Assembly (NCBI RefSeq): GCF_030144855.1 | Contig: NW_026781614.1 | Location: 1-64,000, forward strand | From: Hypanus sabinus | Lineage: Eukaryota | DNA: 64,000 nt | Reading direction: 5' to 3' | In this document: positions 3,849 through 63,915 of the stretch, piece by piece | Numbering within the stretch: the first letter of the stretch is position 1 | How the letters are laid out: every line of letters begins with the position of its first letter | Program-made: the position numbers and the translations under genes | Notes under the pieces: generated by a model | The model's input: only the letters and a program-made list of their open reading frames with translations | What the model was told of the DNA's origin: nothing | Database searches by the model: none

Positions 3849-4786
3849 TTATTGAAAATTCCGCTTACTTACCATTAAACACGGGTGTGATCTACACAGA
3901 TAGCCATTCAATGTAAACACATACGTTATTCCATTCCTCAACTCTTCCCTGAATTTCCTCTGCGTCAGTGCATAGATACAAGTATTGGTGCACATGCTGA
4001 GTATTTCCAGCATGAACCCAAATTGCTGTAGGATGTATACCGGGGAACTCAAATATCTGTTCTCGTAAAAATAGCTTTCCACTTGCCATTTCAAGGAATG
4101 GACTAAATAGGCCATCCAAAATAATATGAAATTTGCTGATATAGAAAACAGCAAAATCATCGATTTCCTGCGGTTTTCCACTTCGGCATCTTTCTGATTG
4201 TCGCCGCTGTGTCGAAGCTTTCTGCGGACTATATTTGCCGCAATGATATGTCTTACAGTGAACCCGTTAAACAACAGGATTAATCCGATTGGCAGCAATG
4301 GTGTTAAAATGCTCTCCAGTAATTCGTATCCTCTCCACACGTCTGAAGTAGCGTATTCCTGTGTGAGGGCGCAACGCCACGGCGTGTTGTCAATGATGGC
4401 GTAAGGTTCAATGACAAAGTATAATGGGGCACATTTCCCACAGCTCACTATAACAACGGTCACGATGACCACCGTTGCTGTTCTCTCGGTGCAGTATCGG
4501 TCCCGCAGCTTTCCGCAACATATTGCGATGAAGCGATCGAAGGTAAAACTTACCGTGAACCAAACAGAACAATCGATCAATATGTCCCGAAATACAAGTG
4601 TCAGAGCGCATACAGGAGTGATGAGCAGGGATCTGTAATAATTGTGGATATAGTTGGTCTGTTCCACTAAAGCAACAACGATAACCACCATCAGATCCGC
4701 TGTTGCCATTCCAACCAGGTAACGGGTGATGCATTTGGAGAGTCCGCATTTTCCCCGAGATAGGATCGCAATCGCCGTTAAATTAA
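3849..4786 (-). CDS. Locus A exon 2: GPR139/GPR142-like rhodopsin-class GPCR (divergent paralog; 335 aa with exon 1)
   Basis: Acceptor ttcttgcag|TTAATTTA on the - strand. Open frame (V)NLTAIAILSRGKCGLSKC..MATADL..FTFDRFIAICC..PWRC..TNTCIYALTQRKFR, stop at 3849. Confidence 0.92.
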
Positions 4787-5564
4787 CTGCAAGAAATTTG
4801 AATAAAAAATAAATATCGTCAGTGACAACTCACTGAACAACCATTATAACGATGCTATGCAGAATATGGTTTAGCTGCAACTGATCAATGACCCCTCCCC
4901 CCGATTCCTGCAGGGTATGGTCTGTGGAAGTGGAAAGCGGAAATCCAGTGGGTGCGGTCTCCGTCGCTGCACTCCGGCTGGAGGACAATGACGGATGTGA
5001 GTGTCAGTGGATTGGCGACCTTCCCACGGTTTAGAGCGAGGCGTCCGAGTTCCACGACTCACGGACCAGTGAGTAGTCGATCGTTCCTGTAAACATCATT
5101 TCCATCATTAGATGTGAAGTAACAGACGGGATTATTTGTAGCGGTATCAAAGTGGCATCATGGAGATAGAAAGCACGAGTTCTCATTTACTGACTTACAG
5201 AAGAACAGACCTACGTGTCGAAAATAGACTGGGCCGACATTTAAGTAAGCTGGCATGTAGTTATATGATTGAAGTGTCTGCTCTGATAGAGACTCGGGTC
5301 TGGAAAAGCGGACAGCAGCGTCACTTCAGAAAGCCTAGCGATGCGCAATTATGAAACCGTGACGATATCACCAACTTAATTGACAGAAGAGGAAAACACT
5401 CCGATCAAAAAATGAAAAATGGCAATAAAACCGTTAGATGCCTGAATCCTCCATTCCGGAAACACGTTTCAGCCGACGGTAACATCTGCGCTCAGTAAGA
5501 GTGCGGATACCGCAGCAAAGTTTCGAAAGCACTATACATAAAGTGACCAGCTCCGGCATCTTAC

Positions 5565-5634
5565 CGGGGACACCAACCGCTACAAGTGTGGGATAGAATA
5601 TGCCCGCGATGTAGTAAATCGCCGCATATCCCAT
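5565..5634 (-). CDS. Locus A exon 1 (MGYAAIYYIAGIFYPTLVAVGVP+G)
   Basis: ATG at 5634, donor CCCG|gtaag. 70 nt + 938 nt = 1008 nt, in frame with exon 2, completes TM1. Confidence 0.9.
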
Positions 5635-5709
5635 ATTCCGTAAGAAGAAGCGTTCAGTTGTGCGGAGCGTTTCAGCTGCTCAGATGGACTGGGGATCGGT
5701 TTAGCAGAC

Positions 5710-5790
5710 AGAAATTTATTGAGTTGAGAGCAATTCCACTGAGTCAATTTGCGTGGCTGTCACGTCAGGGACATTAGTGACAACCAACAG
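5710..5790 (-). promoter_or_regulatory. Putative core promoter of locus A
   Basis: TATA-like AATAAAT ~85 bp upstream of the ATG, AP-1 TGAGTCA at 5740-5746 and CRE-like TGACGTGA. Layout resembles the upstream region of locus F. Confidence 0.4.
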
Positions 5791-17759: not shown

Positions 17760-18670
17760 CTTTACCCCTCTCTTCCCTTCCCCTCACTTGCCTCGTGTGT
17801 ATACTTCTCTCTACAGTGTAGCGTTCTCTACCACTTGCTCCTCTCTTTCCTCACCCTCCCCCGTCTTTCCCCACAGCTGCAGATCCCTGTAACTCCCTCA
17901 GCCCAACCCCCCTTTCTCAAGGCACACACTCAGCCTTCATCCTCCTCTACATCCCATCCCACTACACGCCCATATTTTTCACTGCATCACTCCCTCCTTC
18001 ACTCTCCCCTAGTCTCCTACCTCTCCCCTGCTCTTCTCGGCCCCTATTTCTTCCTGGCACCATTTCTCGCTGTTCCTCTTCCCCGCAGGCTTTCTCCCTC
18101 CTCTCTCTATCCCATGCTACTGGCACTTCGTTGCTATTCTATCACTTCCCAGTTTTTTAATTCACCTCCTCTTTCCCTCACGCTCTCACACTTATCTGCT
18201 ACGTTCATTCTCTCCCATCTCGTTACCCCTCTCTTGACCCACTGCTCCCTCCCTCCCCTTATTTCCCTCTGTCACCTTTCGTCTTTCACACTTCATCACC
18301 TCTCTCTTTCGCTTACTCTCCCTCCGCATCTCTCTCCCTACATCAATCTCTCTGCCCTTATATTCCCCCCTCTACTGTTCCCCCTCTTACAACCGTACTG
18401 CCCCGCAACATCCAGCCCCTTCCTGCTCCCGAGGCTCCGAGCCTCTCTCTTTCTTTCCCAGTCTCCTCTTCCCTCTTCCTCCCAGCTCTGCTTCCCGCAC
18501 TCCCCCCCCCCTTTCTCACTCTCTGTTTCTCCCTGTCTCTCTCACTCTCTCTCTCTCTCTTCTAACGTTTCCACTCCGGACTCCCTTCGCTGCCACCTCT
18601 CGCCTGCTACACATTCTTTCTCCCCGACGCAGTCCTGCCAATCGCTCCGCAATTTTCTCTTGGTCTCTGC
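17760..18670. repeat. CT-rich low-complexity tract upstream of locus B
   Basis: Polypyrimidine strand bias. Its end sequence is shared with 31040-31660. Confidence 0.8.
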
Positions 18671-18889
18671 ACCTGTGGCGAGAGTGTTGCCGATGGGTTA
18701 TTTGGGGGATTGGCTCTGGGCGGTCGGTCCAGAGGACAGTGGTATTATTTCGGGGAAGGAGACGAGGCCGTGAAGACAGCGCACTGCCGTGTGTTAGTTT
18801 GTCGATTGATACAGTGCTGTGGGGAACGGGGGGGGGGCGAAGGTAGTGGGATTAGTTTTCGATCGAGTGTCAGTGCGTGTGTTCCGTTT

Positions 18890-19595: not shown

Positions 19596-19671
19596 ATGTC
19601 TACATTGTTTGAAAGGTACCGACATGTGGACAAAATAGTGAGCGTGTCCATTGTCGTCATTGGAGTTCCTG
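19596..19671 (+). CDS. Locus B exon 1 (MSTLFERYRHVDKIVSVSIVVIGVP+G)
   Basis: AAAATG start, donor CCTG|gtgagt. Homologous to the exon 1 copies at 33250 and 52213. Confidence 0.9.
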
Positions 19672-20701: not shown

Positions 20702-21030
20702 GATACCATGAGAGCATAAGACATTGGAGCAGAAGTAGTCCATCTGTCCCATCGTGTCTGCTCCGCCGTTCAGTCAGGACTGATACTTTTTTCTCCTCCT
20801 CAACCCCAGTTCCCGTCCCTTTCTCCGTAGCCTTTGATGTCCTGTCCAATAAAGAACCTATCGATCTCTGTCTTAAATACACCCAGGGACCTGTCTTTCC
20901 CAGCTGCATGTAACAACACATTCTACATATGTACCACCATTGGCTGAAGAAAGTTCTCCGCATCTCAGTTTTGAAAGGGCGAATCTCTATCCTGAGGCTG
21001 TGCCCTCTTGTCCGAGTCTCTCCCGCCATA
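20702..21030 (-). mobile_element. Antisense CR1 3' fragment in the intron, shared with C (34195-34345) and D (39680-40005)
   Basis: (CATAAGAC)n tail; peptide ETRTRGHSLRI..FKTEMRRTFFSQ. Confidence 0.8.
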
Positions 21031-21084
21031 AATGAAATTAAGTTTAATAATGCCCGGTGTCTGTCCCCTTCTCTCTCCCTGCAG

Positions 21085-21992
21085 TGAATTTATTGGCGAT
21101 TGTGATCCTGTCCCGTGGAAAGTGCGGCCTCTCTACCTGCACCACTCGCTACCTGGTGGCCATGGCAGCGGGAGATCTGCTGACGGTAGTCATAGAGGTC
21201 CTTGGACGTCAAGTCTTAGATTATTACTTTCCGTGGAATTTTCTAAGGATTTACCCTGCATGCAGGTTTATCGAGGTACTGAGACTCACAGCCACATACT
21301 GCTCTGTCTGGTTCACCGTCACCTTCACTTTTGATCGGTTTGTCGCCATCTGCTGTCAGAAGCTGAAAACAAAATATTGCACCGGGAAAACTGCGGCTGT
21401 GGTTCTGACAATAACGGACGTGCTGTCCTTTCTGAAAAACGTTCCCCGCTACTTCCTCTGGGAACCCAGAGAGATAATCAACAACGTACCGTGGCGCTGT
21501 AGAGTGACAGCCAACACTTTCACTGATCTCGGATGGGTAGTATACGATTGGCTAGACATAGTTTTAACTCCATTCATCCCATTCGCTGTGATTCTGCTTT
21601 CCAACGCTCTGACGGTCAGGCACATTGTTGTGGCCAGTCGAGTCCGTAAGGGGCTGAGCGGTCAGAGCAAGGGGGAGAACAGCAGAGACCCGGAGATGGA
21701 GAGCCGGAGGAGGTCTGTGGTTTTACTCTTCACCCTCTCCGGCAGCTTCATTCTCCTGTGGATGACAAACGTTGTAAATTTCATGTATTATGAGATCAAA
21801 GGAATAGGATTTAAATTCAATGATTCCGAAAAAATCTTTCACATGGTCGGAGCCTTGCTGAAGAATTTCAGCTGCTGTACGAACACATTTATTTACGCGG
21901 TCACTCAGTCGAAATTCAGGGAGCAGGTGATCAGCGCGGTGAAATATCCGGTCACCTCGGTGATTCAGTTCATTACTCAGGCCGCGCACTGA
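21085..21992 (+). CDS. Locus B exon 2: GPR139-like GPCR (327 aa total)
   Basis: Acceptor ctctctccctgcag|TGAAT. Intact frame with AAGDL (TM2), DRF (TM3), ECL2 PWRC and TNTFIY (TM7); TGA at 21992. Confidence 0.93.
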
Positions 21993-22244: not shown

Positions 22245-22443
22245 NNNNNNNNNNNNNNNNNNNNNNNNNNNNNNNNNNNNNNNNNNNNNNNNNNNNNNNN
22301 NNNNNNNNNNNNNNNNNNNNNNNNNNNNNNNNNNNNNNNNNNNNNNNNNNNNNNNNNNNNNNNNNNNNNNNNNNNNNNNNNNNNNNNNNNNNNNNNNNNN
22401 NNNNNNNNNNNNNNNNNNNNNNNNNNNNNNNNNNNNNNNNNNN
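22245..22443. other. Assembly gap
   Basis: Run of N. Confidence 1.
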
Positions 22444-31458: not shown

Positions 31459-31531
<73 letters not shown>

Positions 31532-31660
31532 CCTCCCATGTGTCTCATTCGTTTCTCCCTTCACCCCCACTCTCTCACTTCCTGCACCCTCTTTTGTCCA
31601 CCACACCCTTCTGCCCATCACTCCGCAGTTTTCCCTTTCTCTCTCCACCTGCGGCGAAAG
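31040..31660. repeat. CT-rich tract with a (CT)n microsatellite (~31461-31528) upstream of locus C
   Basis: Direct inspection. Confidence 0.85.
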
Positions 31661-33249: not shown

Positions 33250-33325
33250 ATGCCTGAATTGTTTGATAGATACATACGAGTGGACAAAATACTGAACGTG
33301 TTCATTGTCTTCATTGGAGTACCTG
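33250..33325 (+). CDS. Locus C exon 1 (MPELFDRYIRVDKILNVFIVFIGVP+G)
   Basis: ATG at 33250, donor CCTG|gtgagt, preceded by the shared promoter module. Confidence 0.88.
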
Positions 33326-34371
33326 GTGAGTGAGCACAGATATTCGTGTTTGGCACTTCTGTCTGTAAGCCGGTGTGAGGTTGTTTGAGTTCATTTTACA
33401 AGCTTCCCGCTGATTTTCGTGGCAGTAATATACGTTAGTGATATTGAGCTTGTCTATTCAATATTCTGAATGTTCATATTTGATGACAAACCGAACTAAA
33501 CCCCTGACTCTCCTCTAACTCACGGGATCGACTCGAACGTTGTTCTTGCATTTGATGGAATTTTGTTCAGAGTGGTCCCAATGCTGGGGACAGGCAGCTC
33601 TCCGGGAATGAGAGACTAGAAATGTTTTACATTGTGGTGTTGACTGTTTATGTTATTGACCGGAGTGATTGACACCCTCTCCAGAGCTGCCCCAGTGTTG
33701 TGAGCCGGGAATCCTCCGGGAATGTGTGACTGGGAAGATTTAATGGCACGCTGTCCATGTTGACCCAGGAGGGCGGGCAGCACTCCGCGACGGTGTGACT
33801 TGGAGGGGTTTGCATTTTGAAGCTCTCAGACTGTGTTACTGATCAGATTGAACCCTTGCTCCTGTGTTTCTCCTCTCCCTGTGGAACCTGTCACAGTCGC
33901 ATTCAATAATGAATAACCAGTTTGTCAATAATCGGGTCTGATCTCCTGCACCTGAGTCACGGATCTACTGACGTAGGTTGTCAAAATGAGCTCCGTTGTT
34001 GAAGTAATCCATTTATGGAGACAATCGGCATCTGGTTACTATGTTGTTCCGGTTTTCCCTCTGAGACCCGACCTCAAGCCGTGCCCCGTATTGCCCTGAG
34101 GAAAGGCCTCGGTCGCATACTTTGAGCGTCTGTTCAACGTGGCGACTGCTGCTGAGTTCCCCCAGCATTTTGTGTGTGTTGTCTCCCTTTGCATACCTTA
34201 AGAACATAAGACAGAGGAGCAGAATTACACCATCTGTCCCATTGTGTCTGCTCCGCCGTTCAATCATGGCTGATCCATTCTGCTTCTTCTCCTCAACCCC
34301 AGTTCCCAGTCTTCTGCCCGTGAACTTTGATGCCATGTCCAAACAATGCCAGGTGTCTGTTCTCCCTGCTG

Positions 34372-35282
34372 TGAATTTAATGGCGATTGTGATCCTGTCC
34401 CGGGGAAAGTGCGGCCTCTCCACCTGCACCACTCGCTACCTGGTGGCCATGGCAGCGGGGGATCTGCTGACCGTAGTCATAGAGGCCCTTGTGCGTCAAG
34501 TCTTAGATTACTACTTTCGATGGAATTTTCTGAAAATTACCCCTGTGTGCAGGGTTATCGAAATACTGAGGCTCACAGACACATACTATTCTGTCTGGTT
34601 CAACGTCACCTTCACTTTTGATCGGTTTGTCGCCATCTACTGTCAGAAGCTGAAAACAAAATATTGCACCGGGAAAACTGCGGCTGTGGTTCTTACAACA
34701 ACCGGCGTGCTGTCCTCTCTGAGAAGCGTTCCCCGCTACTTCCTCTGGGAACCCGGACAGATAATCGACAATGACCGGTGGTTCTGTGAACTCACGGCCA
34801 ATACTTTTACTCACCTCGGATGGGTCGTATACGATTGGCTTGACATAGTATTAAATCGGTTCATCCCTTTCGCTGTGATTCTGCTGCTCAACTCTCTGAC
34901 GGTCAGGCACATTGTTGTGGCCAGTCGTGTCCGTAAGGTGCTGAGGGCACAGAGCAAGGGGGAGAACAGCAGTGACCCGGAGATGGAGAGCCGGAGGAGG
35001 TCTGTGGTTTTACTCTTCACCCTGTCCGGCAGCTTCATCCTCCTGTGGATGACGAACGTTGTAAATTCCATGTATTATAAGATCGCAGTAATAGGATTCA
35101 TGTATATCAATGATTCTGAATGGATCTTGCACATGGTCGGAGCCTTGCTGAAGAATTTCAGCTGCTGCCCGAACACATTTATTTACGCGGTCACTCAGTC
35201 GAAATTCAGGGAGCAGGTGATCAGCGCGGTGAAATATCCGTTCACCTCGGTGATTCAGTTCATTAATCAAGCCGCGCACTGA
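34372..35282 (+). pseudogene. Locus C exon 2: GPR139-like, frame open but splice acceptor mutated (probably non-functional or skipped)
   Basis: ctccctgcTG|TGAAT instead of ..cAG|TGAAT. The intron 3' part, including the tttaat branch region seen in B and D, is deleted. Private changes at conserved sites: WFNV, AIYC, NDRW, NRFIP, CPNT. Confidence 0.65.
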
Positions 35283-37189: not shown

Positions 37190-38741
37190 GAAAGTAGGAG
37201 AGTCTGAAGGGCCCATGAGAGGGCCTTGGCGGGCAGGATTCAGGAAAACCCCGTCATTCTACGGGTATGTGAAGAGCAAGAGGATAAGTCGTCAAAGAAT
37301 AAAACCTGTCAAGTGTGACAGTGGGAAAGTGTGTATAGAACCGGAGGAAATGGCAGAGATACCTAATGAATAATTTAATTCTGTATTCGCTATGGAAAAG
37401 GATCTTGGTGATTGTACTGATGACTCACAGCAGACTGAAAAGCTCCAGCATGTAGATTTTAAGAAATCGGATGTGCTGGAGCTTTTGGAAAGCATCAAGT
37501 TGGGTCAATCGCCGGGATCGGATGGGATGCACCCCAGTCTACTGTGGGAGGCGAGGGAGGAGATTGATGAGACTCTGGCGAGGATCGGCATCACCAAAGG
37601 GGAAGAGAGAGGATCCGGAGGATCGGAGAGTTGCGGATGTTGTTCTTTTATTCAAGAAAGGGAGTGGAGACAGCCCAGGAAATTATAAACTAGTGAGTTT
37701 TACCTCTGTGGTCTGTACGTTGATGGAGAAGATCCTGAGAGGAAGGTTTATGATGTATAATATGATTATGAAATCTCACCATGGCTTTGTCAAGGAGAGG
37801 TCGTGCCTTACGAGCTTGATTGAATTTTCTGAGGATGTGACTAAACACATTGATTCAGGAAGAGCAGTGGATGTAGTGTGTATGGATTTCCGTAAGGTAT
37901 TTGACAAGTTACCCCATGCAAGGATACTTAAAAGTAAAGAGGCATGTTATCCAAGGAGACATTGCTTTGTGGATCCAGAAGTGCATTGCCCGCAGAAGGC
38001 AAAGAGTGGTTGTAGCCGGTTCATATTCTGCTTGGAGGTCGATCAACAGTGGAGTGCCTCAAGAATCTGTTCTGCGACCATGACTCTTCGTGGTTTTTAT
38101 AAATGACCTGATGAGGAATGGGTTAGTAAGTTTGCTTATGACACAAAGGTTGGATGTGTTGTTGGTAGTATGGACGGCTGTCAGAGGTTACAGAAGGATT
38201 TTGATAGGATGCAGAACTGTGCTGAGGAGTGGCAGATGGAGTTCAACCCACATAAGTGTGAAGTGGTTCATTTTGGTAGGTCGACTATGATGACATAATA
38301 TAGTATTAATTGAAAGACTATTGGCAGTGTGCAGGATCAGAGGGTTATTGGGGTCCGAGTCAATCGGTTGCTCAAACAATTGCGCAGGTTGATTCTGTAG
38401 TTAAGAAGGCGTACGGTGTATTGTCCTTCATCAATCGTGGAATTGAATTTAGGAGCCGAGAGGTAATATTGCAACTATATAGAACCCTAGTCAGACCACA
38501 CTTAGAGTACTGTGCTCAGTTCTGGTCGCCTCACTACAGGAAGGATGTGGAAGCCATAGAAATGGAGCAGAGGAGATTCACAAGGGTATTGCCTGAATTC
38601 GAAAGAATACTTTTTGAGAATAGATTGAGTGAACTCAGCGTTTTCTAGGTGGAGCGACGGAGGATGAGAGGCGGCCTGATAAAGGTGTATAAGATGATGG
38701 GAGGCATGGATCGGGTGGATAGTCAGAGGCTTTCTCCCAGG
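37190..38741 (+). mobile_element. CR1 ORF2 fragment, truncated at both ends
   Basis: PGNYKLVSFTSVV, SCLTSLIEF, VRPHLEYCAQFWSP. Confidence 0.88.
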
Positions 38742-39484
38742 TCATGTGACACGTTCTGCAAAACGTCGCGACATCATTTCTCAAACCAGGCCATTAAAAA
38801 TGCTTGTAACCTTGTTCACAATTTTCATCACACGCTGATTTCTACCCAAGGGCAGACTATGGGCTAATATTAAAATCTCATTTCGATAAACTATAGGAAA
38901 AACTAGCTGGTGAACAACCTTCCATTCATCACTTGCAGGAATTGTAGGCAATCTCCACTTCCTCATTAAAACTCCTTCAACAAAATAATATCCTACTGGC
39001 TCCTTATCAACCTCACTATCCAGAAGAGCTTGTTCCTTTAATCTGATAATCCCAGGGTCTCTGCTCTGCTCTGCTATCATCTCCCTCCGAGACAGAGACA
39101 AATCTTCAGTGTCAGACTTACTCAAAGAATTGTGTTCAAACAATGGTTAAAAAGTTTCCGAAACATCCTCAAAACTCGAATCCTGAGCTGACCAGTCATG
39201 GATAACAACCGCATTCTGCACATCAAGCTTTTTTACCCACAGCTCGAGTTACAACACAGAAAGAATCTTTGTTTGAATACATCCGTCGTTCCTCAGACTT
39301 TATTGTCAAATGCACTTCAGGAAAAACTTGCCCGTCAGCCAAGTCATTTCCTAACAGTAAAGAAACATCATTCACAGGTAAGCTAGCTTGTAGTCCTACT
39401 TTACCAAGTCTTATGAAAAACACTGACCTTAAATTTACTTTATGCAAATGTACAGGCATAAGGGCACTCCCGTCACCTCGCGGT
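38742..39484 (-). mobile_element. Gypsy internal fragment (protease end directly followed by integrase zinc-binding region; Gmr1-like)
   Basis: LPVNDVSLLLGNDLA then EQSRDP..GVLMRKW..ILILAH..FCRTCH. Confidence 0.8.
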
Positions 39485-40328
39485 AGAAGTAATCCATTAT
39501 CGGAGCCACTCAGCATCTGGTTACTACGTTGTCCCGGTTTCCCCTCAGTGTTCCGAATTAAAGTAGTGCCCCGTTTGCCCTGAAGAAAGGCCTCGGTCTC
39601 GTACTTTGAGTGTGTGTTCAACGTGGCGACTGCTGCTGACTTTCCCCAGCATTTTCTGTGTGTTGTCTCCCTTTGAATAGCATAAGACCATAAGACATAG
39701 GAGCATGAGTAGTCCATCTGTCCCATCGTGTCTGCTCCGCCGTTCAATCATGGCTGATCCTTTCTTTTTCTTCTCCTCAACCCCAGTTCCCAGCCTTCTC
39801 CCGGTGACAGTTGATGCCATGTCCAATCAAGAACCTATCAATCTCTGTCTTAATCACAGCTACATGTGGCAACAAATTGTGGCTAAAGAAATCACTCTTC
39901 TGTTCTGAGGCTGTGCCCCCTTATCCTAGACTCCCCCCCCCAAGGAAAACATCCTTCCCACGTCTTCTTTTACCATTCAGAAGGCTTCAATCAGATCCCC
40001 CTCTGATCCCCGGAGACCGTCTCGGCCCCGTCAGATGCTGAGTTTCCAGAGGTCTGGGCAGTCACGGTTAAATAAGTGACGGGAACCGGGATGAGCACAG
40101 ATCGTTGTTGTTCATGGCGCTCATGTTTAACCCCGACGATTACCGGCACATCACCTTATCTCCACACTGAAGGTAGGTCGGAGGCAGTGTGACCCATGTT
40201 TGGTGTTGGATGAGCAGCCGTTCACCGGATCCAGCGCTCCTAACATCTGGCTGAAACTCGAACATGTGTACATTCCCGGAGAATGAGTTTAATAATGCCC
40301 GGTTTCTGTTCTCTTCGCTCTCCCTCAG

Positions 40329-41236
40329 TGAATTTAGCAGCGATTATGATCCTGTCCCAGGGAAAGTGCGGCCTCTCTACCTGCACCACTCGCTACCTGG
40401 TGGCCATGGCAGCGGGGGATCTACTGACCGTAGTCATAGAGATCCTTTTGCGTCAAGTCTTACGATATTATTTTCCGTGGAATTTTCTGAGGATTACCCC
40501 TGTGTGCAAGGTTATGGAGGTACTGAGGCACACAGACACATACTGTTCTGTCTGGTTCACCGTCACCTTCACTTTCGATCGGTTTGTCGCCATCTGCTGT
40601 CAGAAGCTGAAAACAAAATATTGCACCGGGAAAACTGCGGCTGTGGTTCTGTCAACGGCTGGCGTGCTGTCCTTTCTGAGAAGCTTTCCCCGCTACTTCC
40701 TCTGGGTACCCAGAGAGATAATCAACAATGTACCGTGGTTCTGTGAACTCACAGCCAATACTTACACAGACCTCGGGTGGGTAGTATACGATTGGCTCGA
40801 TATAGTTTTAAATCCGCACATCCCGTTCATTGTGATTCTGCTGCTAAACGCTCTGACGGTCAGGCACATTCTTGTGGCCAGTCGTGTCCGTAAGGGGCAG
40901 AGGGGTCAAAGCAAGGGGGAGAACAGCAGGGACCCGGAGATGGAGAGCCGAAGGAGGTCTGTGGTTTTACTCTTCACCCTCTCCGGCAGCTTCATCCTCC
41001 TGTGGATAACGAACGTTGTAAATTCCATGTATTATGAGATCAAAGGAATAGGATTCAACTTCAATGATTCTGAATGGATCTTTCACATGGTTGGAGCCTT
41101 GCTGAAGAATTTCAGCTGCTGCACGAACACATTTATTTACGCGGTGACTCAGTCGAAGTTCAGGAAGCAGGTGATCAGCGCGGTGAAATACCCGTTCACC
41201 TCGGTGTTTCAGTCGATCAATAAAGCCGCGCACTGA
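40329..41236 (+). CDS. Locus D exon 2: intact GPR139-like exon with no own exon 1
   Basis: Acceptor ctctccctcag|TGAAT, intact 908-nt frame. Upstream intron homology stops at ~39485 against a Gypsy fragment. Confidence 0.8.
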
Positions 41237-44924: not shown

Positions 44925-45390
44925 CCGTGATCCAGGCCCGGGAGCTGGGAGTGTGTTTCCGAGAGGGAGGAACGGCCCGAGGTTTGGATGGTAGAGGTCC
45001 GGGTTTCGGGACCGGCGACGAAGGGCTCAGCTCGCCGCTCGGCCAGGCTTACTGGTCCCTGGGCTGAACTCAGATTACCGTGATCCAGGCCCGGGAGCTG
45101 GGAGTGTGTTTCCGAGAGGGAGGAACGGCCCGAGGTTTGGATGGTAGAGGTCCGGGTTTCGGGACCGGTGACGAAGGGCTCAGCTCGCCGCTCCGCCAGG
45201 TTTACTGGTCCCTGGGCTGAGCTCAGATTACCGTGATCCAGGCCCGGGAGCTGGGAGTGGGTTTCCGAGAGCGAGGAACAGCCCGAGGTTTGGATGGAAG
45301 AGGTCCGGGTTTCGGGACCGGTGACGAAGGGCTCTGCTCGCCGCTCGGCCAGGTTTACTGGTCCCTGGGCTGAACTCAGATTACCGTGAT
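44925..45390 (+). repeat. 153-bp tandem repeat, 3 near-identical copies
   Basis: CCGTGATCCAGGCCCGGG at 44925, 45078 and 45231; partial copy at 45384. Confidence 0.95.
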
Positions 45391-45584
45391 CACAGCTCCG
45401 TGGCGACGGACGCTCGGGGTCTTCAGATGTTTGGTTATTCCTGCTGTTTGCCCGGATTGTGTGTTTTTCTCTTTGCTCTTTCTGTGTTCGTCCATCTTTT
45501 CACTTCTTTATTTTGTGGCTGCCTGCTGAGAGAGGAACTCAAAAATAAACGAACTTGGACTTCGACTTTGAAACACCACCGGAG

Positions 45585-48500
45585 GAGAACAACAGAGAAA
45601 AACTACAGCACACTCCAGGCCCTTCGGCCCACAAGCTGTGTCGAACACGTACTGACTTTACAAATTACCTCGGGTTACCTGCAGCACGCTATCTTTGTAA
45701 GCTCCATGTACCAAAACAAGAGTCTCTAAAAAGATCCTATCGCATCCGGGTCCACCATCACTCTGTGAGTCAAACGTTTACCCCTGACATCTCCTCTGTC
45801 CCTACTCCCCAGCACCTTAAAACTGTGCCCTCTCGTGCTAGCCATTTCAGCCCTCGGAAAGAGCCTCTGTCTATCCACACGATCGATGCCTCTCATCATC
45901 TTATACATCTCTCATCCTCCACCGCTCTAAGGAGAAAAGACCACGTTCACTCAACCTATTCCTGTAAGGGATGCCAATCCGGGCAACAACCTGGTAAACC
46001 TCCTCTTCACCTTTTCATATAGTTTTCACATCTTTCCTGGTGTGAGGTGAATAGTACTGAGCACAGTACTCCAAGTTGGGTCTGACCAGAGTCTTAAATA
46101 GCTGTAACATTACCTGTCGGCTCTTAAACTCAATCCCACCGTTGATGAAGGCCAATGCACCGTCTGCCTTCTTAACCACAGAGTCAACCTGCGCAGCAGC
46201 TTTGAGTATTCTATGGACTCTGACCCCAATATCCCGCTGATCCTCCACACTGCCAATATACTTACCATTAATGCTATTTATCATCACATTTGACCGACCA
46301 AACTGAACCATGTTACACTTATCTGGGTTGAGCACCATCTGGTAATTCTCAGACCAGTTTTACATCCTATCAATATCCCGCTGTTACCTCTGACAACCGT
46401 CCAGACTATCCATAACACCCACAACCTTTGTGTCATCAGCAAACTTGTGAATCCATCCCTCCACTTCCTCACCCAAGTAATTTATAAAACACGCAAAAGG
46501 ACTGGTACACAGAACACAGAGAGACAGTTCTCAACACAAGGTAACGGCAAACGGCCGGACCTAACCAGCGCAGGCGAGGACACAGAGACGGTTCCCAACA
46601 TAATGTAGCAACAAACGGCTGAACCTACCCATCGAATGCATGGACACAAAGAGTCAGTTCCAAACCACAAAAGTCAGTTCCTCTTCGAGACACTTCAAGG
46701 CTCCGGTCTTGCTCAGGCAGTAGGACTTGACAGCGATACAGACAAAGTTGCAGGCAAGGCTTCATAAGGAAGGGGATCGAAAGGGAACAGTCCTACAAAT
46801 GAAGCTGACCCAGGAGCTATTTATGTATCCAGCCCAAACTGAGATTCAGTTGCCTCGATTAGAGCACCAAGCAGAATGAGGGAATACCGGAAAACTCGGA
46901 ATAACGATGAGCCGGACCGTGAACCGGAATGTGGTCTTCACGGACCGGATGATGACACTGTTCCCAATTTATGCTTTCAAGCTTTGCTTGATAGGTTTAT
47001 AGTTCCGCTTACTTCAGTTAAACTCTTTCCTAATTTGTCTGTTCCTATCGCTCTCCAATGCTATGGTAAAGGAGATAGAGTTGTGATCATTATCTCCAAA
47101 ATGCTCACCCACTGAGAGATCTGACACCTGACTAGGTAAATTTTTCGATACCAGATCAAGTATAGCCTTCCCTGTTGTAGACCTATCTACATATCGTGTC
47201 AAGAAACCTTCTTGAACACACCTAACAAAATCCAGCCCATCTGATCCCCTCACTCTAGGGTCTTGCCAATCCATATTTGGGAAATTAAAATCTCCCACCA
47301 CGACAATCCTGTTACTATTACACCTTTCCAGAATCTGTCTCCCGATCTGCTCCTCGATGTTCCTGTTACTGATGGGTGGTCTATAAAAAACACCCAGTGA
47401 AGTTATAGACCCTTTCCTGTTTCTAACGTCCAGCCACAGAGATTTCGTAGACAATTCCTCCATGTCTTCCTCCTTTCCTACGGCCGTATCACTATCTCTG
47501 ATCAACAGTGCCATGCCCCACGTCCTTTGCCTCCCTTCCCGTCCTTTCTGAAAAAATCCTGAATCTAAATCTAAACTCTGAAGTCTGCAATGGACACAAC
47601 ATCATAGCTCCAAGTACTGATAGACGGCTAAAGCTCAACCACTTTGTTTCTGATGCGACTTGCATTAAAATAAGCACATCTCAGACCATCAATCTGAGCG
47701 CGTCCCTTCTCGATCAGCTGGCTATCCTCCCTCTCGCACTGTCTCAAAACTTCCTCTATCTGTGAGCCATCTGCCCCTTCCTTCAGTTTGCTCCCACCCC
47801 CATTGATCCCAGTTTAAACTCGCCTCAATAACCTTGGCAAATCTCCCTGCCAGGTTATTGGTCCCCCTGGGAATCAAATGCAACCCGTCCTTTTTGTACA
47901 GGTCACTCATGCCCCCCAAAAAGTGCCAGTGATCCAGAAATCTGAATCTCTTCCTCTTGCTCCAATCCCTCAGCCTCGCATTTATCCTCCTCCTCACTCT
48001 ATTTCTATACTCACTGTCGCGTGGCACAGGCGACTACCTTTCTGCTTCTGCTTCTCAACATCCTTCTTAACTCCTTCTTGTGTGCTTTCAGAACATCCTC
48101 CCCTTTCCTGCCTATGTCGTTGGTACCAATATGTAACACGACCTCTGGCTGTTCTCCTTCCCAGTTCAGGATATCGTAGACACGATCAGAAACTTCGCCG
48201 ACCCTGGCATCTGGGAGGCAAACTACCACCCGAGTTTCTTCCCTGAGTGCAAAGAATCGCCTGTCTGCCCCACCCCCAACCCCCGGCAACTAGAGAGTAC
48301 CCAATCACGACGGACTTTCTCTTCCTTTCCCTACCTTTCTGAGTCACATGACCACCGTTGCTACCCCCAGGTAGGCCATCCCCCCAACAGTACTCAAACA
48401 GGAGTACTTATTATCAAAGTGTACAGCCACATGGGTACTCTCTAGCCTCTGACTCCGGCCCTTCCCGCTCCAGACTGTTACCCACTTATCGGTCTAGCCA

Positions 48501-51059: not shown

Positions 51060-52212
51060 GTGAATACCTTTCTCAATTCTCGGTACGTGTCAGAGAAATA
51101 GAAGGCAGCAAGATTTCCTTTCTCAGAGCAAGCCTTTCTCTCAATGGCGACGAACGTAGACATGTTCCACACCCATGACAAAGTCTGGTACATTTCACCC
51201 GAACACAAACAAGCTGAGGACAGCTACTGGTCATCGGAAGTGAGATCTGCGGATGGTTACTGGAAATCGGGCGTGAGATCTGAGGATGGCTACTGGCAAT
51301 CAGGAGTGAGATCTGAGGATGTTTACTGGTAGTAGGGAGTGAGATCTGAGGACGGGTAGTGGCTATCCGGAGGGAGATCTGCGGATGGTTACTGGTAATC
51401 GGGAGTGAGATCTGAGGACTGTTACTGGAAAACGGGAGTGTGGTCTGAGGACGGTTACTGGAAAACGGGAGTGTGGTCTGAGGACGGTTACTGGAAAACG
51501 GGAGTGTGGTCTGAGGACGGTTACTGGAAAACGGGAGTGTCGTCTGAGGACGGTTACTGGAAAACGGGAGTGTGGTCTGAGGACTGTTACTGGAAAACGG
51601 GAGAGTGGTCTGAGGATGGTTACTGGTTATCGGGAGTGAGATCTGAGGATGTTTACTGGTAGTAGGGAGTGAGATCTGAGGACGGGTAGTGGCTATCCCG
51701 AGGGAGATCTGCGGATGGTTACTGGTAATCGGGAGTGTGGTCTGAGGACTGTTACTGGAAAACGGTAGTGTGGTCTGAGGATGGTTACTGATAATCGAGA
51801 GTGAGATCTGAAGATAGTTTCTCCTAAATTCAGTCGGTCTCCTGAACCGATGTCCAAGATTGGCATGACATAATATTAGGTGTTGATGTGGTTCTATTGG
51901 TGCTTGGAAAGGTATACCCTTTGTTGGAAAAAATGCCACTCGCTATTTACAACACTGAGTACCGTCATAATTTCCATTGTTCGCAGTTCCATAATTCATT
52001 CACTAAATTAACTATAGTGATGCACCGCGGGGATTCCACTTGTGTGATATAATCGGATCGAAAATAACTTAAACATCTGTAATTTTAAATTTGTTAAACT
52101 CGGTCCCTGTGGAGTCGCAAAATGGTATTAAAACCCTAGGCATATGCTGCCGCAGCACCCCATTCCGGGAGATCGCCTGTGGTACACGGGCACAAATCAC
52201 CGGCCAGAGAGG
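51060..52212 (+). promoter_or_regulatory. Shared upstream module of locus E, interrupted by a minisatellite
   Basis: Homologous to B and C on both sides of the 30-bp array. TATTAAAA at 52126. Confidence 0.45.
51212..51815 (+). repeat. 30-bp minisatellite, ~20 copies
   Basis: Unit CTGAGGAYGGTTACTGGWAAWCGGGAGTGWGRT-like. Confidence 0.95.
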
Positions 52213-52288
52213 ATGCCTGCATTGTTGGATAGGTTCTTGAGTGTCTATAAAGTATCGAACGTGTTCATTGCCGTCATCGGAGTTCCCG
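52213..52288 (+). CDS. Locus E exon 1 (MPALLDRFLSVYKVSNVFIAVIGVP+G)
   Basis: ATG at 52213, donor CCCG|gtgagt, homologous to B and C exon 1. Confidence 0.88.
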
Positions 52289-53237: not shown

Positions 53238-53409
53238 NNNNNNNNNNNNNNNNNNNNNNNNNNNNNNNNNNNNNNNNNNNNNNNNNNNNNNNNNNNNNNN
53301 NNNNNNNNNNNNNNNNNNNNNNNNNNNNNNNNNNNNNNNNNNNNNNNNNNNNNNNNNNNNNNNNNNNNNNNNNNNNNNNNNNNNNNNNNNNNNNNNNNNN
53401 NNNNNNNNN
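53238..53409. other. Assembly gap in the 3' end of the locus E intron
   Basis: Run of N, 8 bp upstream of exon 2. Confidence 1.
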
Positions 53410-53417: not shown

Positions 53418-54337
53418 TGAACTTAGTCGCGATTGTGATTCTCTCCCGGGGAAAGTGTGGCCTCTCTACCTGCACCACTCGTTACCTGGTGGCCATGGCA
53501 GCGGGGGATCTATTGACCATTGTAATCGAGGTTATTTTGCGTCAAATCATTTACAGGTATAATTATCATTCGTGGATTTTTCTGAACATTACCCCTGTGT
53601 GCAGGGTTGTCGAAGTACTGAGGCAGACAGCCACCTACTATTCTGTCTGGTTCACCGTGACCTTCACTTTTGATCGGTTTGTCGCCATCTGCTGTCAGAA
53701 GCTGAAAACAAAATATTGCACCGGGGAAACTGCGGCTGTGGTTCTCACGACAACCGGCGTGCTGTCCTTTCTGAGAAGAGTTCCCCGCTACTTCCTCTGG
53801 GAACCCAGACAGATAGTCAACAATGTACCATGGTTCTGTGAACTCAGGGCTAACATTTTCACTGACCTCGGGTGGGTAGTATACGATTGGCTCGATATAG
53901 TTTTAAATCCGTTCATCCCTTTCGTTGTGATTCTGCTGCTCAACGCTCTGACGGTCAGGCACATTGTTGTGGCCAGTCGTGTCCGTAAGGGGCTGAAGGG
54001 TCAGAGCAAGGGGGAGAACAACAGGGACCCGGAGATGGAAAACCGGAGGAGGTCTGTGGTTTTACTCTTCACCCTCTCCGGCAGCTTCATCCTCCTGTGG
54101 CTGACGTGGGTGTTAAATTTCATGTATTATGAGATCTCAGGGTTACGATTCAATTTCAATGATTCTGAATGGATCTTTCACCGCGTCGGAGTCTTGCTGA
54201 AGAATTTCAGCTGCTGCACGAACACATTTATTTATGCGGTCACTCAGTCGAAATTCAGGGAGCAGGTGATCAGCGCGGTGAAATATCCGATCACCTCGGT
54301 GTGTCAGTTCATTACTCCGGCCGCGCACGGAGAATAA
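53418..54337 (+). CDS. Locus E exon 2: GPR139-like GPCR (331 aa total)
   Basis: ctctgcag|TGAAC just after an N gap. Intact frame with DRF and TNTFIY; ends AAHGE*. Confidence 0.9.
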
Positions 54338-54767
54338 CGCCGACGCGACCACAGCGTCTGCAGTCCGGGTATTCCTGACATTCACCGCTTGATCTCCCAA
54401 CTGTTAATCCCGGGCGGATTGTCCGGGATCAGTGCACAGTCACTGTAAACGCGTTGGATCTTGTGAAGAACACGTTGCCGAGTCGTTTCAAGTGTTGACG
54501 AAAATCCGCAGACTTGTAATTCCATTACGAAGAAACCTTAAAACCAATCGGCTTGCACTGTCCTCATTCCGTCGGGCAGGCGCCGTCTCTCAGACTGAAC
54601 ACACAATGGCGGTGTTTGTGCATTCTGTCGAGCGGTTTCGAGTAGGAAGAGTGTGTGTCCTTGGTCACCCTTTACAGTACCTGGCAATTGCATCGTGACA
54701 GGGGGACCTGTGGTAGGGCAGAGAAGATTCAGCGTTGCATGACCCTGAGTTTTGGGATCAGTTCCGA

Positions 54768-55182
54768 GTCACTGTCCAGTCTCCTCCTGTCCCGAGCGCT
54801 CCAGTCCCGGCCACAACAGTCCTGACCGCTCACTGCGCCTTCCTACGTCAGTCACTGTCCAGTCTCCTCCTGTCCCGAGCGCTCCAGTCCCGTCCACAAC
54901 AGTCCTGACCGCTTACTGCGCCTTCCTACGTCAGTCACTGTCCAGTCTCCTCCTGTCCCGAGCGCTCCAGTCCCGTCCACAACAGTCCTGACCGCTCACT
55001 GCACCTTCCTACGTCAGTCACTGTCCAGTCTCCTCCTGTCCCGAGAGCTCCAGTCCCGGCCACAACAGTCCTGACCGCTAACTGCACCTTCCTACGTCAG
55101 TCACTGTCCAGTCTCCTCCTGTCCCGAGAGCTCCAGTCCGGGCCACAACAGTCCTGATTGCTCACTGCACCTTCCTACGTCA
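54768..55182 (+). repeat. 83-bp minisatellite, 5 copies
   Basis: GTCACTGTCCAGT at 54768, 54851, 54934, 55017 and 55100. Confidence 0.95.
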
Positions 55183-55619
55183 ATCACGTCCTTCCTGAGA
55201 AGGTCGAACGGAGATGCAGACAGTACTGCAGCTTGGTCATTCCGGTTCAGCACGGGAACAGGCCCGCTTCCTCACCGTGTTGTCCTGAACCAATGGAAGT
55301 GGAGATTTCATGCCTCACTGATTCCAATTCCATCTGCCGGCACAAGGGTCACATACCTCGATTGTCCGCCCACACATGTGGTACCAAATAGCCTCGATCA
55401 CGTCTGCAAAATTCCAGACACACATCACCGTCAGTGTGGAAAAAACATCTAGAAACACACCTCTCTTTTAAACATCCGGAGTCTGGTTCAACATGACTGT
55501 CTTCTATAATACTGATCTCTTTTTCAGTTGCAGAGCAGGGCAAAGATACAGGGTTACAGGAAAATACAAAATAAATACATTGTTTTAAAATCACTAATCA
55601 GGCAGTATTTTCTCTTTAA

Positions 55620-58216: not shown

Positions 58217-58261
58217 TTTTTAACAATATTGAGGAGTCTAACAAAAGGTTTTTCAGATCTA

Positions 58262-60290: not shown

Positions 60291-61454
60291 ACAAACGGGA
60301 AGGAGACAAAGAATTACGTATAACTTTGCTTTTCTTTAGCGTTCTCTGACTGGAGCCGCGAGGATCTGAAGCCTTAAGATCACCACCGTGACTCTGCCGA
60401 CTCAGGCGACGGTCGGGTCTGCAGCACACTTGTAGGCGGCTGCATATTAAATGTCTAGCGAGGCCGTGTCTGGAAACCGAACCCAGTCTGGTCCCCCGCT
60501 GTTGGAAAGATGCTGCTGCAGAGAAGTTTCAGAGGTTTACCAGGGCGCTGCTTGCATTAGCGGGCGTGACTCATCAGGAGAGGGTGGACAACGTGGGTTG
60601 TGTCCTATGGGTTGGCGGAGGCTGGGTGGAGAGCTGATTGAAGCTTATCAGCGTCTGAGGGGCCTAGATAAAGTAGACGGCCGGTACTGTCTCTTTCCGG
60701 TGTGGAAACTTCTGATCCCGGATGACTAAAATGATAACGGCTGATTTCAAAGTAGATGTGCGGGTGATCTTTTCTTTCACACGGGGAGCGCTTGGGTGCC
60801 GGCAATCTACAAGCTGCAATGGCGGTGGAGGCAATTATAGTAAAGGACTGCCAGATGTTCTCAGAAAGGGATATGCAGGAACAGGGCGGATATGGACACC
60901 TGCAGGCGGTAGGAATTGGTTTACTGGGGCATCTTATCACCAGTTTAATTACTGTGCTCATCTGGTCCATGTTCCTGGTTCTGAAATATCCTGTCTTCGG
61001 TACATCCAACTGGCAGCTCGTCCCATATATGTACCACCCTCTGGGTAAAAAGGTTGCCCCTCGGGTATGCTTTAGATCTTTAAATTGGGTACAGTTAAAC
61101 CTCTCACTTTTAGCATACTGTATCTCTTGTGGCTTTGTTGCTCCAATTCCAGAGAAAATACAGCGCACATGCACCAGAACTTTGTCCGTCACATTCAGGA
61201 AGGTATCACAGCCTATAAGGTTAGACAAAGCCTAACGGATTGACATTAGACTGGTCGGATGATGAGAAAGGTTATTGAAGAATCATTATGTGAAAAGTAA
61301 AGGCAAGCACAGCATCAGTAATGTTACAGTCAGTGGGAATCAGCAGAACGCTGTGTAACAAATGCAGTTACGGAACGGAGCGGGACATCTTCACGGAGTT
61401 ACTGTGGGTCAACGAAAGGACCCTCCTGGAGAGATGCTCTCCGCCGGCGAGGGG

Positions 61455-61665
61455 AGCGCTGACGTCACTCCCTCTGGGGAGGGGGTGTTCTGTTGTGGAA
61501 TGTGAATGAAGGAGCTTCATGATCCAGCTGCTTAGTCCATCAGCTGGTGAACAGGTGGCACCGGAGCGGAACATCAACCCTTGTGTGTTCATTGGCTGTA
61601 AGTAACGTCATTCATTGCACAACCCGCCGACCCGTGACGGAGAATTCGTGTTCCCTATAAATTAG
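61455..61665 (+). promoter_or_regulatory. Putative promoter of locus F
   Basis: TGACGTCA at 61460-61467, inverted CCAAT (ATTGG) at 61591, GTAACGTCA at ~61602, TATAAA at 61656-61661. Confidence 0.55.
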
Positions 61666-61734
61666 CAGGGTATCGTGGTCCGAGTCACACGCTGATGTGA
61701 ACTGCACAACAGGAGATAATTCAAGCAATCGAAC

Positions 61735-63915
61735 ATGAATCGACCGGCGATCCTACAGGTGAAAGACGTTTGTTACCCTGTTCTAGCGGTGTTTGGTTTA
61801 CCCGGTAAGTCGTATTAATACATTGTCTAACAGCTATTGGCCTTCGGCAGGACACTGTTATTTTTTATGAAGTATGATCCGAAGATGCGCCGCAATGTGT
61901 CCATTGTACAAGCTGCTCAATAGTCGCTGTATCGTTCCCTGTCCACACGGCCGGTGAGGAGACTTTCCTCTGGACACAGGAGGCCGTCTCCCCATGTCCG
62001 GTGCAAAGGGAACGGAGGGATGCCATCGCTGAAATAGCAGTAGTGTTTCGCTCAGGAGGTAATGTATTTTTCATCGTGCCTGTTGGAGAATAAAAGTGTA
62101 CTACTACAGATGAAGTGGCCATTCGGCCCGCCATGTCAACCTGAACCTCTGCGGTCCTATCTACCGGCACCTGACTAATATTCCTCTACCTCCCTCCCAC
62201 CATGGCCCTTTACAAGCTTATCTTACGTGGTACAACAGATCCCGCACCGTCCGCTCCGCGGGGAGCTGTTTCCACACTCGCAGCAACGTCAGAGTAAATA
62301 ACCTCTCTCAGATTACCCCCGAAGTATTTCAACTTCGACGCGAATCCTATGATCGTTCAAAATAGTCTCACACAACCTGAGGGGAAAAGGCTGAAATGCA
62401 TTTACCCCAATTATACCCCTAATGTATACAAAGATTTCTCATTCCCGTCAGTATCCTTATAAATATTTTGAACTCTGTCACGAATTTTGTTATAATTCCC
62501 GTAACAAGGTGAGTAGAAATTTAAACAATAATACGAATTCGGCTTCAATTACGTATTGTACACCTCCAGCTCAATAACTCCACCCCAGTGCTCAAAGTCC
62601 TGATTTGTGATGGCCGATGTGCAAATTGATCTCTGTGCCACCCGGTTTTCCCAGTGTTTTACTTTAAATGAATGACGGGTCTGTATTTACAGCTCCGTTT
62701 CTTTTATGCGGAGAACCTCACAGCCTACCATTCACCATGCAATGGTAACCTGGTTTACCCTCCTACAGGGCAGCACATTACCCAGGCTCCCAGTAAATTA
62801 CACGTGCTGTTTCTCTGCCCGTTTCCAGCCGGTGAAGATCACACTGTGAAGTACCTTTCCGTCCTGCCTCTGCTCACTCTCAGACCACCGGACTAAACAG
62901 AAATACATCCGAACATATTTCAGAAATAAGTTGTAAAATTCTCCTGTCATCCTCCTTTAATGACGTCTTTATCTGTTGTCTCTTTTTTTCTGTTGCAGCT
63001 AATTTGTTAACAATTATTATTCTTAATAATAAGAATAATATTTTTCCCGGGGAAAATGCGGTCTTTCCAAATGCATCTCTGCCTTCATGACGATGATGGC
63101 TGTGTCAGATCTATCGGTCATTCTCATCAATGTCTTTGTATTTGAGATTTTAATATTCCGCCTGTCAAGTTCATTTCTGCATTATACGGAAGTCCTTAAA
63201 GCCACGATCTACGTGCTGGCGGTCACTCTGGAACTATCACGGTGGTACACGGTGGCCTTCACCTGTGATCGATATGTTGCCATATGTTGTCAGAAGTTTA
63301 AATATTTCGTGGGGTGTCCGCCCGAAATTGGACATCTTCAACTCTCCAATGTTCGTCGCGCTCAGCAGATTCAAAACCTTTCAAAACCTGCTGTGCGCAT
63401 TTGGTTTAATACTTCTATGTAATGGGATGACTGCCAGGCATATCTTCGTGACCAGCAAATCCCGGCGTGGCTTCCGAACCCATAAGAGTAAGATTGAACG
63501 TGACCCGGAAATGGAGAACAGGAAAAAGGGCATCATATTACTGTTCTGTATATCGGGCAGCTTTATACTATTTTGGCTGCCGTCGGCAGTGACCAATTTT
63601 ATCGCCAGCCTAAACATGTATTTTGATCACGACTATTACTCTGCCCGATACATCGCTGCTCAAACCGGGACTCTGCTCACATACATGAGTTCTTCTACAA
63701 ACACGTGTATTTATGCAGCAACCCAAACCAACTTCAGGGCAGAGTTGAAAACGTTGATACTGTCTCCTTGGACGCTTATCCGGGAATTGATCAAGAGAAA
63801 TGTCAGATCACCTAAGGCTTTCTCCCATGAGCAGAACTCAGTTCCAGCTCGCACACGTCTTACAACAGGCAACATTTTGTTGAAGATCCGCGCTTTTAGT
63901 TCGAGAATAAGATAA
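61735..63915 (+). pseudogene. Locus F: GPR139-like pseudogene (exon 1 61735-61804, exon 2 62999-63915)
   Basis: Exon 1 MNRPAILQVKDVCYPVLAVFGLP+G|gtaag, acceptor tgttgcag|CTAAT. A 20-bp insertion (63025-63044) gives TGA at 63088. A second lesion at ~63305 removes about 38 codons (ICL2-TM4) and shifts frame. Confidence 0.88.

Follow-up and report, generated by a model that had tools for sequence, protein, structure and literature searches.

A tandem array of two-exon, GPR139-like receptor genes in Hypanus sabinus belongs to a family expanded in cartilaginous fishes

Which receptors are encoded by the repeated loci at the beginning of contig NW_026781614.1 of Hypanus sabinus, from which lineage do they descend and what might so many related copies sense? 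The window, i.e. the whole stretch of DNA that was analyzed, comprises 64,000 nt (positions 1-64,000, forward strand) and contains these loci between positions 3849 and 63915. An initial annotation had described them as a cluster of GPR139-like receptors, possibly devoted to the sensing of amino acids or peptides. Our analysis demonstrates that the window contains a section of a tandem array. Its two-exon genes code for class A G-protein-coupled receptors (GPCRs), whose family is massively expanded in cartilaginous fishes, above all in sharks and rays. Sequence comparisons show the family to be old and distinct, a gnathostome lineage that falls within a GPR139-like superclade devoid of P7.50. 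The copies probably constitute a repertoire that senses diverse ligands and shares one signalling partner.

To define the array, a scan for open reading frames (ORFs) was combined with Pfam searches. Six loci (A to F) belonging to three subfamilies (A; B to E; F) were detected. All of them matched the domain 7tm_1 with E-values ranging from 2.6e-7 (F, a fragment) to 2e-23. Compared to the gathering cut-off of 30.5 bits, the scores of A to E (67-84 bits) and of the F fragment (30.8 bits) were higher. Two-exon models were obtained by mapping full-length annotated homologs onto the window, after which the junctions were inspected. They are given below, a slash marking the splice boundary.

3849..4786, minus strand: gene A exon 2 with stop; spliced product of 335 amino acids, intact
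5565..5634, minus strand: gene A exon 1, 23 codons plus 1 nt, ending with ...VGVP; donor G/GTAAGA
19596..19671, plus strand: gene B exon 1, ending with ...IGVP; donor G/GTGAGT
21085..21992, plus strand: gene B exon 2 with stop; spliced product of 327 amino acids, intact
33250..33325, plus strand: gene C exon 1 with a canonical donor
34370..34371, plus strand: position of the gene C splice acceptor, TG in place of AG
34372..35282, plus strand: gene C exon 2, open frame; T77N and C89Y at near-invariant columns
40329..41236, plus strand: gene D exon 2, intact, with a CAG acceptor; exon 1 missing
52213..52288, plus strand: gene E exon 1, mapped from annotated homologs
53418..54337, plus strand: gene E exon 2 with stop; spliced product of 331 amino acids, intact provided that both sides of a gap are continuous
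61735..61804, plus strand: pseudogene F exon 1, ending with ...FGLP; donor G/GTAAGT
62999..63915, plus strand: pseudogene F exon 2, with a 20-nt insertion at about 63025-63044 and a loss of 38 codons at about 63302

Exon 1 (approximately 23-25 codons) covers the N-terminus, which is very short, together with the outer half of the first transmembrane helix (TM1). Since it ends with G-V/L-P plus one base, the intron is in phase 1 and lies one codon ahead of N1.50. Donor sites read G/GT(G/A)AG and acceptor sites (C/T)AG/. This phase-1 GT-AG intron after G(V/L)P, already described in the initial annotation, is present in A, B, C, E and F, i.e. in each locus having an exon 1. The short N-terminus, DRF in A to E and DRY in F, the replacement of NPxxY by NTxIY (seen as NT(F/C)IY in the window copies) and GLP/ANLLTIIIL in TM1 of F were likewise recovered. 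A, B and E are intact, while C, D and F (three of the six copies) are damaged. The division into three subfamilies in intact, damaged and pseudogene states also stood up, as A is 43-45% identical to B to E, and relatives of the F type are 35-38% identical to B. The subfamily of gene A is divergent, its closest relatives stemming from Mobula hypostoma (63%) and Rhinoraja (58%). For F and for B to E, the best matches were proteins of H. sabinus itself, with 96% (F) and 82-85% (B to E) identity; none was identical.

Loci B to E are contained in tandem segmental duplicate units located at 18.9-23.5 kb (B), 32.5-37.2 kb (C), 39.5-42.4 kb (D) and 51.9-54.5 kb (E). Identity among these units amounts to 86-90% in exon 2 and 74-81% in the flanks. 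The array has grown as units of approximately 3-5 kb, comprising promoter, exon 1, intron, exon 2 and 3' flank, were segmentally duplicated in tandem, and it decays through ordinary lesions, namely loss of a splice site in C, 5' truncation in D as well as an insertion and a deletion in F. In C, the acceptor reads CTG/TG, compared to CAG/TG in B, D and E. Its substitutions T77N and C89Y affect columns that are conserved in 140 of 140 and 136 of 140 other members, respectively, and C is probably a young pseudogene. Exon 2 of D reveals zero departures from conserved columns, and no exon 1 was found anywhere in 35283-40328. Self-comparison indicated that the duplication unit of D begins inside the intron at approximately 39479, with sequence derived from a long interspersed nuclear element (LINE) upstream of it. 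For F, comparison with the 96% identical, intact relative P0121 disclosed the 20-nt insertion after ...TIIIL and the loss of codons 119-156, which encode the end of the second intracellular loop (ICL2), TM4 and the start of the second extracellular loop (ECL2); the frame is shifted. The duplication units, the damaged copies and the species- and order-specific clades described below agree with the lineage-specific tandem expansion by birth and death that the initial annotation had proposed.

How large is this family and where does it occur? A search with D yielded 2,397 clusters (90% identity, E<=1e-5), the best 120 of which were all from elasmobranchs and mostly carried the automatic name 'probable GPR139'. 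An exhaustive profile search gave about 141 clusters (50% identity, E<=1e-30). With the C-terminal piece of F as query, only elasmobranch proteins were obtained, named V2R-like, allatostatin-A-R-like, SIFamide-R-like, C5aR-like or GPR15-like. Such wandering names imply a weak link of the F relatives to any named receptor. Many full-length, intact models exist in every annotated elasmobranch. In a tree of 234 sequences, B to E grouped with two H. sabinus proteins (support 99) within a batoid-only clade of 32 sequences (support 97), and sharks formed separate clades. In a second, more careful tree, two family representatives with UniProt accessions of one series, putatively that of the elephant shark, nested inside the family. 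Databases contain very many copies of the family and not just the few genome-wide that the initial annotation had named as an argument against its own proposal. A description of this expansion was not encountered in the searchable literature, and papers found there on shark chemosensation make no mention of the family, which is thus apparently undescribed and very large in sharks and rays.

Among receptors with a solved structure, human GPR139 was the best match to the family profile (72 bits, E 3e-19), PrRP-R, CCR5, NTSR1 and GHSR reaching 49 bits at most. Single-sequence queries from subfamilies A and D likewise retrieved GPR139 as top solved match. The claim that GPR139 is the nearest characterised receptor is borne out by the distance between 72 bits and the next-best 49, and GPR139 is the top solved relative of each subfamily as well as of the family profile. 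Both share the TM1 motif G-L/V-P-x-N-[IL]-L, the short N-terminus and the lack of P7.50 (NFFLY in GPR139, NT.IY in the family); the human motifs ILTVIILS (TM1) and NFFLY (TM7) cited in this context are visible in the PDB alignment. The TM7 signature N-x-x-[IL]-Y without P7.50 and the TM1 signature G-x-P-x-N were found in the window copies, in proteins of a salamander, coelacanth, catshark, Seriola and amphioxus, and in GPR139. Judged by these signatures, the superclade is made up of GPR139, the amphioxus 'GPR139', a conserved orthogroup and the expanded family. The amphioxus protein bridges both ends, since it scores 137 bits against the family profile and 101 bits against human GPR139. Foldseek searches of Swiss-Prot models were tried as a placement tool and discarded as non-discriminating; GHSR, the galanin receptor, the sex-peptide receptor and GPR139 all gave template-modelling scores of 0.72-0.76.

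On the other hand, there are conspicuous differences to GPR139. The family is only about 20% identical to it, possesses cytoplasmic cysteine motifs of its own, is devoid of P6.50 and comprises hundreds of copies, whereas GPR139 is a single-copy gene. GPR139 and GPR142 are mammalian orphan receptors of class A that respond to L-Trp and L-Phe. Agonists of GPR139, among them these two amino acids, depend on residues F3.33, H5.43, W6.48, R6.51 and N7.38 (PMC5430874). Only W6.48 is kept in the family. Positions 3.33, 5.43 and 6.51 are hypervariable, with entropies of 2.9-3.6 bits, and position 7.38 is occupied by Gly in 114 of 144 members. Because the agonist contacts are not kept, the genes do not qualify as true orthologs of GPR139. 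The initial annotation had supposed the same, and this agrees with the lineage-specific clades and with some 2,400 clusters instead of a low copy number. Its suggestion of amino-acid sensing, by contrast, is left without specific support, since the residues by which GPR139 recognizes aromatic amino acids are not conserved.

Two explanations draw on this neighbourhood of solved receptors. One is that the genes encode neuromodulatory or neuropeptide receptors of the brain, similar to GPR139, which expanded along with a diversified family of endogenous ligands. The ranking of GPR139 in first place, followed by the PrRP, NTSR1, GHSR and galanin receptors, fits this idea. However, receptors for endogenous ligands are normally low in copy number and related one-to-one, while the genes under study form species- or order-specific clades with rapid turnover and have not kept the GPR139 agonist contacts. 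This makes a neuropeptide role very improbable. The other explanation is a leukocyte repertoire of chemoattractant-like or pathogen- and peptide-sensing receptors, diversified by host-pathogen pressure. CCR5, CCR1, CCR2 and CCR3 are among the next-best solved relatives after GPR139, and some members have been named C5aR-, GPR15- or ACKR3-like by NCBI. Yet chemokine-receptor scores are no better than those of neuropeptide receptors, and a motif scan of the window, which is a weak test, did not detect segments resembling immunoglobulin or T-cell receptor V segments. An immune function is therefore regarded as unlikely, albeit less so than a neuropeptide role.

To clarify the origin of the family, the tail of the representative search was examined. 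It contained proteins of a salamander (228 bits to the family profile), the coelacanth (200 bits), teleosts (191 and 131 bits) and the amphioxus 'GPR139' (128-137 bits). Searches with four tail proteins, from the coelacanth, Engraulis and amphioxus and the unnamed UniRef protein P0377, gave GPR139 as best solved relative of each; P0377 was placed by the tree among frog sequences of the orthogroup. By means of the coelacanth protein, a conserved and apparently single-copy 'probable GPR139' orthogroup (P0349, P0403-P0520) was found, whose members stem from sharks, the coelacanth, sturgeon, bichir, bowfin, teleosts, amphibians, turtles and squamates. None of the 120 matches listed came from a bird or mammal. 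PMC6504862 names 'GPR210' subtypes, with which the orthogroup is possibly identical. Fusions with TMEM183A in some of its gene models suggest that the orthogroup gene and TMEM183A lie next to each other.

The careful tree was calculated with IQ-TREE and rooted on amphioxus, and its support values are given as bootstrap / SH-aLRT (Shimodaira-Hasegawa-like approximate likelihood ratio test). The expanded family was recovered with 100/99, the family together with the salamander gene with 100/100 and the conserved orthogroup with 100/98. The salamander gene, represented by P0337, P0389 and P0392 (Pleurodeles, Ambystoma and Lissotriton), is restricted to salamanders, evolves fast and is the sister of the whole expansion in cartilaginous fishes. 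An approximately unbiased (AU) test rejected a grouping of this gene with the orthogroup (p=0.012), although the grouping was named after the tree had been seen and involves a long branch. The salamander protein shares the ICL2 motif CC..K.K.YC and the ICL3 motif DPEM..RR with the family. In two teleost genes of the orthogroup (L002:3001-4186 and L003:3001-4131), a single phase-1 intron occupies the homologous TM1 position (...GIP/SN), while the amphioxus gene is intronless.

The orthogroup is the nearest large sister group of the family and has in common with it the intron site and the lack of P7.50 (NMYLY). Otherwise it behaves differently: it follows the species tree with identities of 50-66% and apparently one copy per species, DRF is replaced by ERF, and W6.48 is missing. 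As sharks retain both groups, the expansion was not derived from the orthogroup within elasmobranchs. The rooted tree, the shared motifs and the shared intron rather indicate that the family is an old gnathostome paralog which was kept and multiplied by cartilaginous fishes. Among bony vertebrates, salamanders seem to be the only ones in which the lineage has survived. The idea of a recent offshoot of GPR139/GPR142 gives way to a separate old gnathostome lineage with a salamander ortholog of its own and a conserved sister orthogroup, in a tree that covers the family, the salamander gene, the orthogroup and amphioxus.

Where the copies differ and where they agree was analyzed on an AlphaFold2 model of the B exon 2 product (predicted local distance difference test score 86.4, predicted template-modelling score 0.83), from which helices, ECL2 hairpin and helix 8 were defined. 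The 7tm_1 match, the predicted seven-helix fold with helix 8 and the microswitches assign the family to the class A (rhodopsin-like) GPCRs. Among 144 family members, D2.50 is present in 142, R3.50 in all, and W6.48 and Y7.53 in 143 each; DRF occurs in 132. P6.50 is lacking (Thr in 96/144), as is P7.50 (T7.50 in 143/144). The cytoplasmic face is near-invariant, comprising GKCGLS.C in ICL1, DRF, CC.K.K.KYC in ICL2, DPEMENRR in ICL3 and helix 8. It includes five near-invariant cysteines (126-144 of 144; C13 and C18 in ICL1, C89, C90 and C98 in ICL2, numbering of B exon 2), which may be lipidation or metal sites. Only the three in ICL2 are kept by the salamander sister, and the conserved orthogroup largely lacks them. 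The F-type subfamily (F and the intact P0121-P0123) is devoid of the cysteines of the TM3-ECL2 disulfide (C3.25 and the ECL2 Cys), both of which are kept by about 88% of the family.

Column entropy over the 144 members was on average 1.88 bits on the extracellular and 0.80 bits on the intracellular side (p=1e-21). The 27 canonical pocket positions reached 2.39 bits as compared to 1.06 bits for the other TM positions (p=9e-10), and positions contacting the G protein showed only 0.48 bits. Hence, the ligand pocket has diversified as in chemoreceptor families. Both contrasts, outer versus inner side and pocket versus remainder, persist within the young batoid clade. Even the window copies diverge here, with L, D, Q and H at 3.33 and N, Y, W and N at 6.51. 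By contrast, conservation reaches 95% or more in 60 columns when sharks and rays are compared. Each copy would probably bind its own small molecule or short peptide within the helix bundle, beneath the ECL2 hairpin, and all copies would signal via one common G-protein partner. Different ligands and a shared partner are what would make the copies, taken together, a diversified ligand-sensing repertoire.

Repertoires of this kind are known from the OR, TAAR, V1R/ORA and T2R families. These are also large, lineage-specific and arranged in tandem, evolve by birth and death with many pseudogenes, vary at pocket-lining positions of TM3, TM5, TM6 and TM7 and show moderate ratios of nonsynonymous to synonymous divergence (dN/dS, omega). 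The genes under study display the same behaviour, that is a large lineage-specific tandem repertoire with pseudogenes and variability at pocket positions. They differ in belonging to another sequence lineage and in a coding region split by the TM1 intron, as coding regions of OR, TAAR, V1R and T2R genes are typically intronless.

It is tempting to regard the family as an unrecognised family of vertebrate chemoreceptors, i.e. an old lineage with one gene in salamanders, lost elsewhere, and hundreds of genes in cartilaginous fishes, where it would serve as an 'odorant-receptor-like' repertoire of nose, mouth or skin; this proposal is tentative. Expression would be expected in olfactory, gustatory or solitary chemosensory cells, one or few copies per cell, supplementing the small OR, TAAR and V1R sets. 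Known chemoreceptor families resemble it in the number of genes, the tandem arrangement, the share of pseudogenes, the lineage-specific clades and the pocket variability. According to two studies, essentially V2Rs alone among the four classical families are expressed in shark noses (PMC10116579, PMC6368271), which leaves room for such a family. On the other side, all that was recovered from RNA-labelled runs were short contigs of paralogs or orthologs, 85-92% alike and without tissue label, and omega is below 1 at the pocket codons of the window. A chemosensory role is the foremost candidate, though it is given less than even weight.

Several observations weigh against a diversified repertoire of old, separate origin. 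Half of the six copies in the window (C, D and F) carry damage. The tree excludes true GPR139 and GPR142, as homolog searches returned only the family and nearer relatives, so that the family was placed relative to these two receptors by means of bit scores to the solved structure, and the branch of the salamander sister is long. In the RNA-labelled runs, 11% of the sampled words at most were found. Four runs analyzed on the gap-free B locus provided the short contigs mentioned above, in which no joint between exon 1 and exon 2 occurred, and some of these contigs extend into intron sequence. Among B to E (exon 2 stretches 21087-21989, 34374-35279, 40331-41233 and 53420-54334), omega is below 1 in all partitions (outer 0.42, inner 0.28, pocket 0.30), and positive selection at the pocket codons was accordingly not seen. 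Furthermore, codons of the inner face show 2.4-fold less synonymous divergence (0.15) than those of the outer face (0.36), with variable four-fold sites numbering 11/69 and 16/31, respectively (p=4.6e-4). Due to this lowered synonymous divergence, the constancy of the inner face in the young copies does not result from selection at the protein level alone. Homogenisation across all copies or constraint at the nucleotide level are possible causes.

These data could be taken to mean that the array is evolutionary debris, in which a duplication-prone, repeat-rich region copies a gene of modest or single function and the observed pattern reflects conversion and relaxed constraint. The three damaged copies, the LINE fragments and repeats between copies, the lower synonymous divergence of the inner face and the missing exon joint at the B locus would be in line with it. 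However, dN/dS is well below 1, pairwise values among B to E ranging from 0.35 to 0.52 with the highest in pairs including C, and a run-length permutation test found no significant pairwise gene-conversion tracts among B to E. The pocket-focused pattern is also visible family-wide, where synonymous sites are saturated. The 60 columns conserved to at least 95% between sharks and batoids, which split hundreds of millions of years ago, require purifying selection in spite of this saturation, and every annotated elasmobranch has many intact full-length models. We therefore consider debris improbable and retain the diversified ligand-sensing repertoire as the likely explanation. Concerning its biological role, the possibilities rank from chemosensation via immune sensing and largely decaying duplicates down to brain neuropeptide receptors.

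The sequence between and within the copies contains the following further features.

20805..21065, no strand assigned: high-copy interspersed repeat in the B intron; the homologous part of the E intron holds a gap
22245..22443, no strand assigned: assembly gap in the 3' flank of B (intergenic), 250 nt past the stop, flanked by blocks colinear with C and D
37471..38103, plus strand: LINE reverse-transcriptase fragment (RVT_1, just below the Pfam cut-off) where exon 1 of D would be expected
53238..53409, no strand assigned: assembly gap in the E intron, ending 8 nt upstream of the acceptor

On both sides of the E gap, E is colinear with B (promoter, exon 1 and early intron; acceptor and exon 2), and the unaligned stretch around it measures 468 nt versus 524 nt in B. 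Both gaps thus fall outside coding sequence, in stretches whose order matches that of paralogous units, and the sequence may be continuous across them. The repeat in the B intron had word depths of thousands in all four RNA-labelled runs, which represent several organisms, and is probably a SINE-like (short interspersed nuclear element) sequence. A corresponding high-copy repeat plausibly explains why the assembly broke in the E intron. A third assembly gap (178 N) at 126-303 is situated outside the array. A LINE endonuclease fragment (Exo_endo_phos_2) was located at 47017-47514 on the minus strand between receptor copies. A minisatellite of 33 nt with about 18 copies at 51214-51811 yields a spurious minus-strand ORF of 288 amino acids (51073-51939). 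Other minisatellites reside at 44925-45391 (153 nt x 3.1) and 54767-55191 (83 nt x 5.1). Just upstream of the B and C units, CT-rich low-complexity tracts (17835-18773 and 31139-31819) produce long, spurious ORFs rich in Ser, Leu and Pro.

New in this study are the outgroup structure with the salamander sister and the conserved orthogroup, the shared intron, the comparison of the gap surroundings with paralogous units, and the finding that omega is below 1 in the pocket while synonymous divergence of the inner face is depressed. Cartilaginous fishes have acute chemical senses and yet very few OR, TAAR and V1R genes, V2Rs being their only sizeable olfactory family in published work. All annotated sharks and rays possess the family described here, a second large repertoire with variable pockets, which makes it a concrete candidate to close this chemosensory gap. 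If the genes were expressed by leukocytes instead, they would represent an unusual innate sensing system. In either case, the family signature and the relatives now recognised, i.e. the salamander ortholog and the orthogroup with the same intron, offer a framework for naming these receptors better than 'probable GPR139'.

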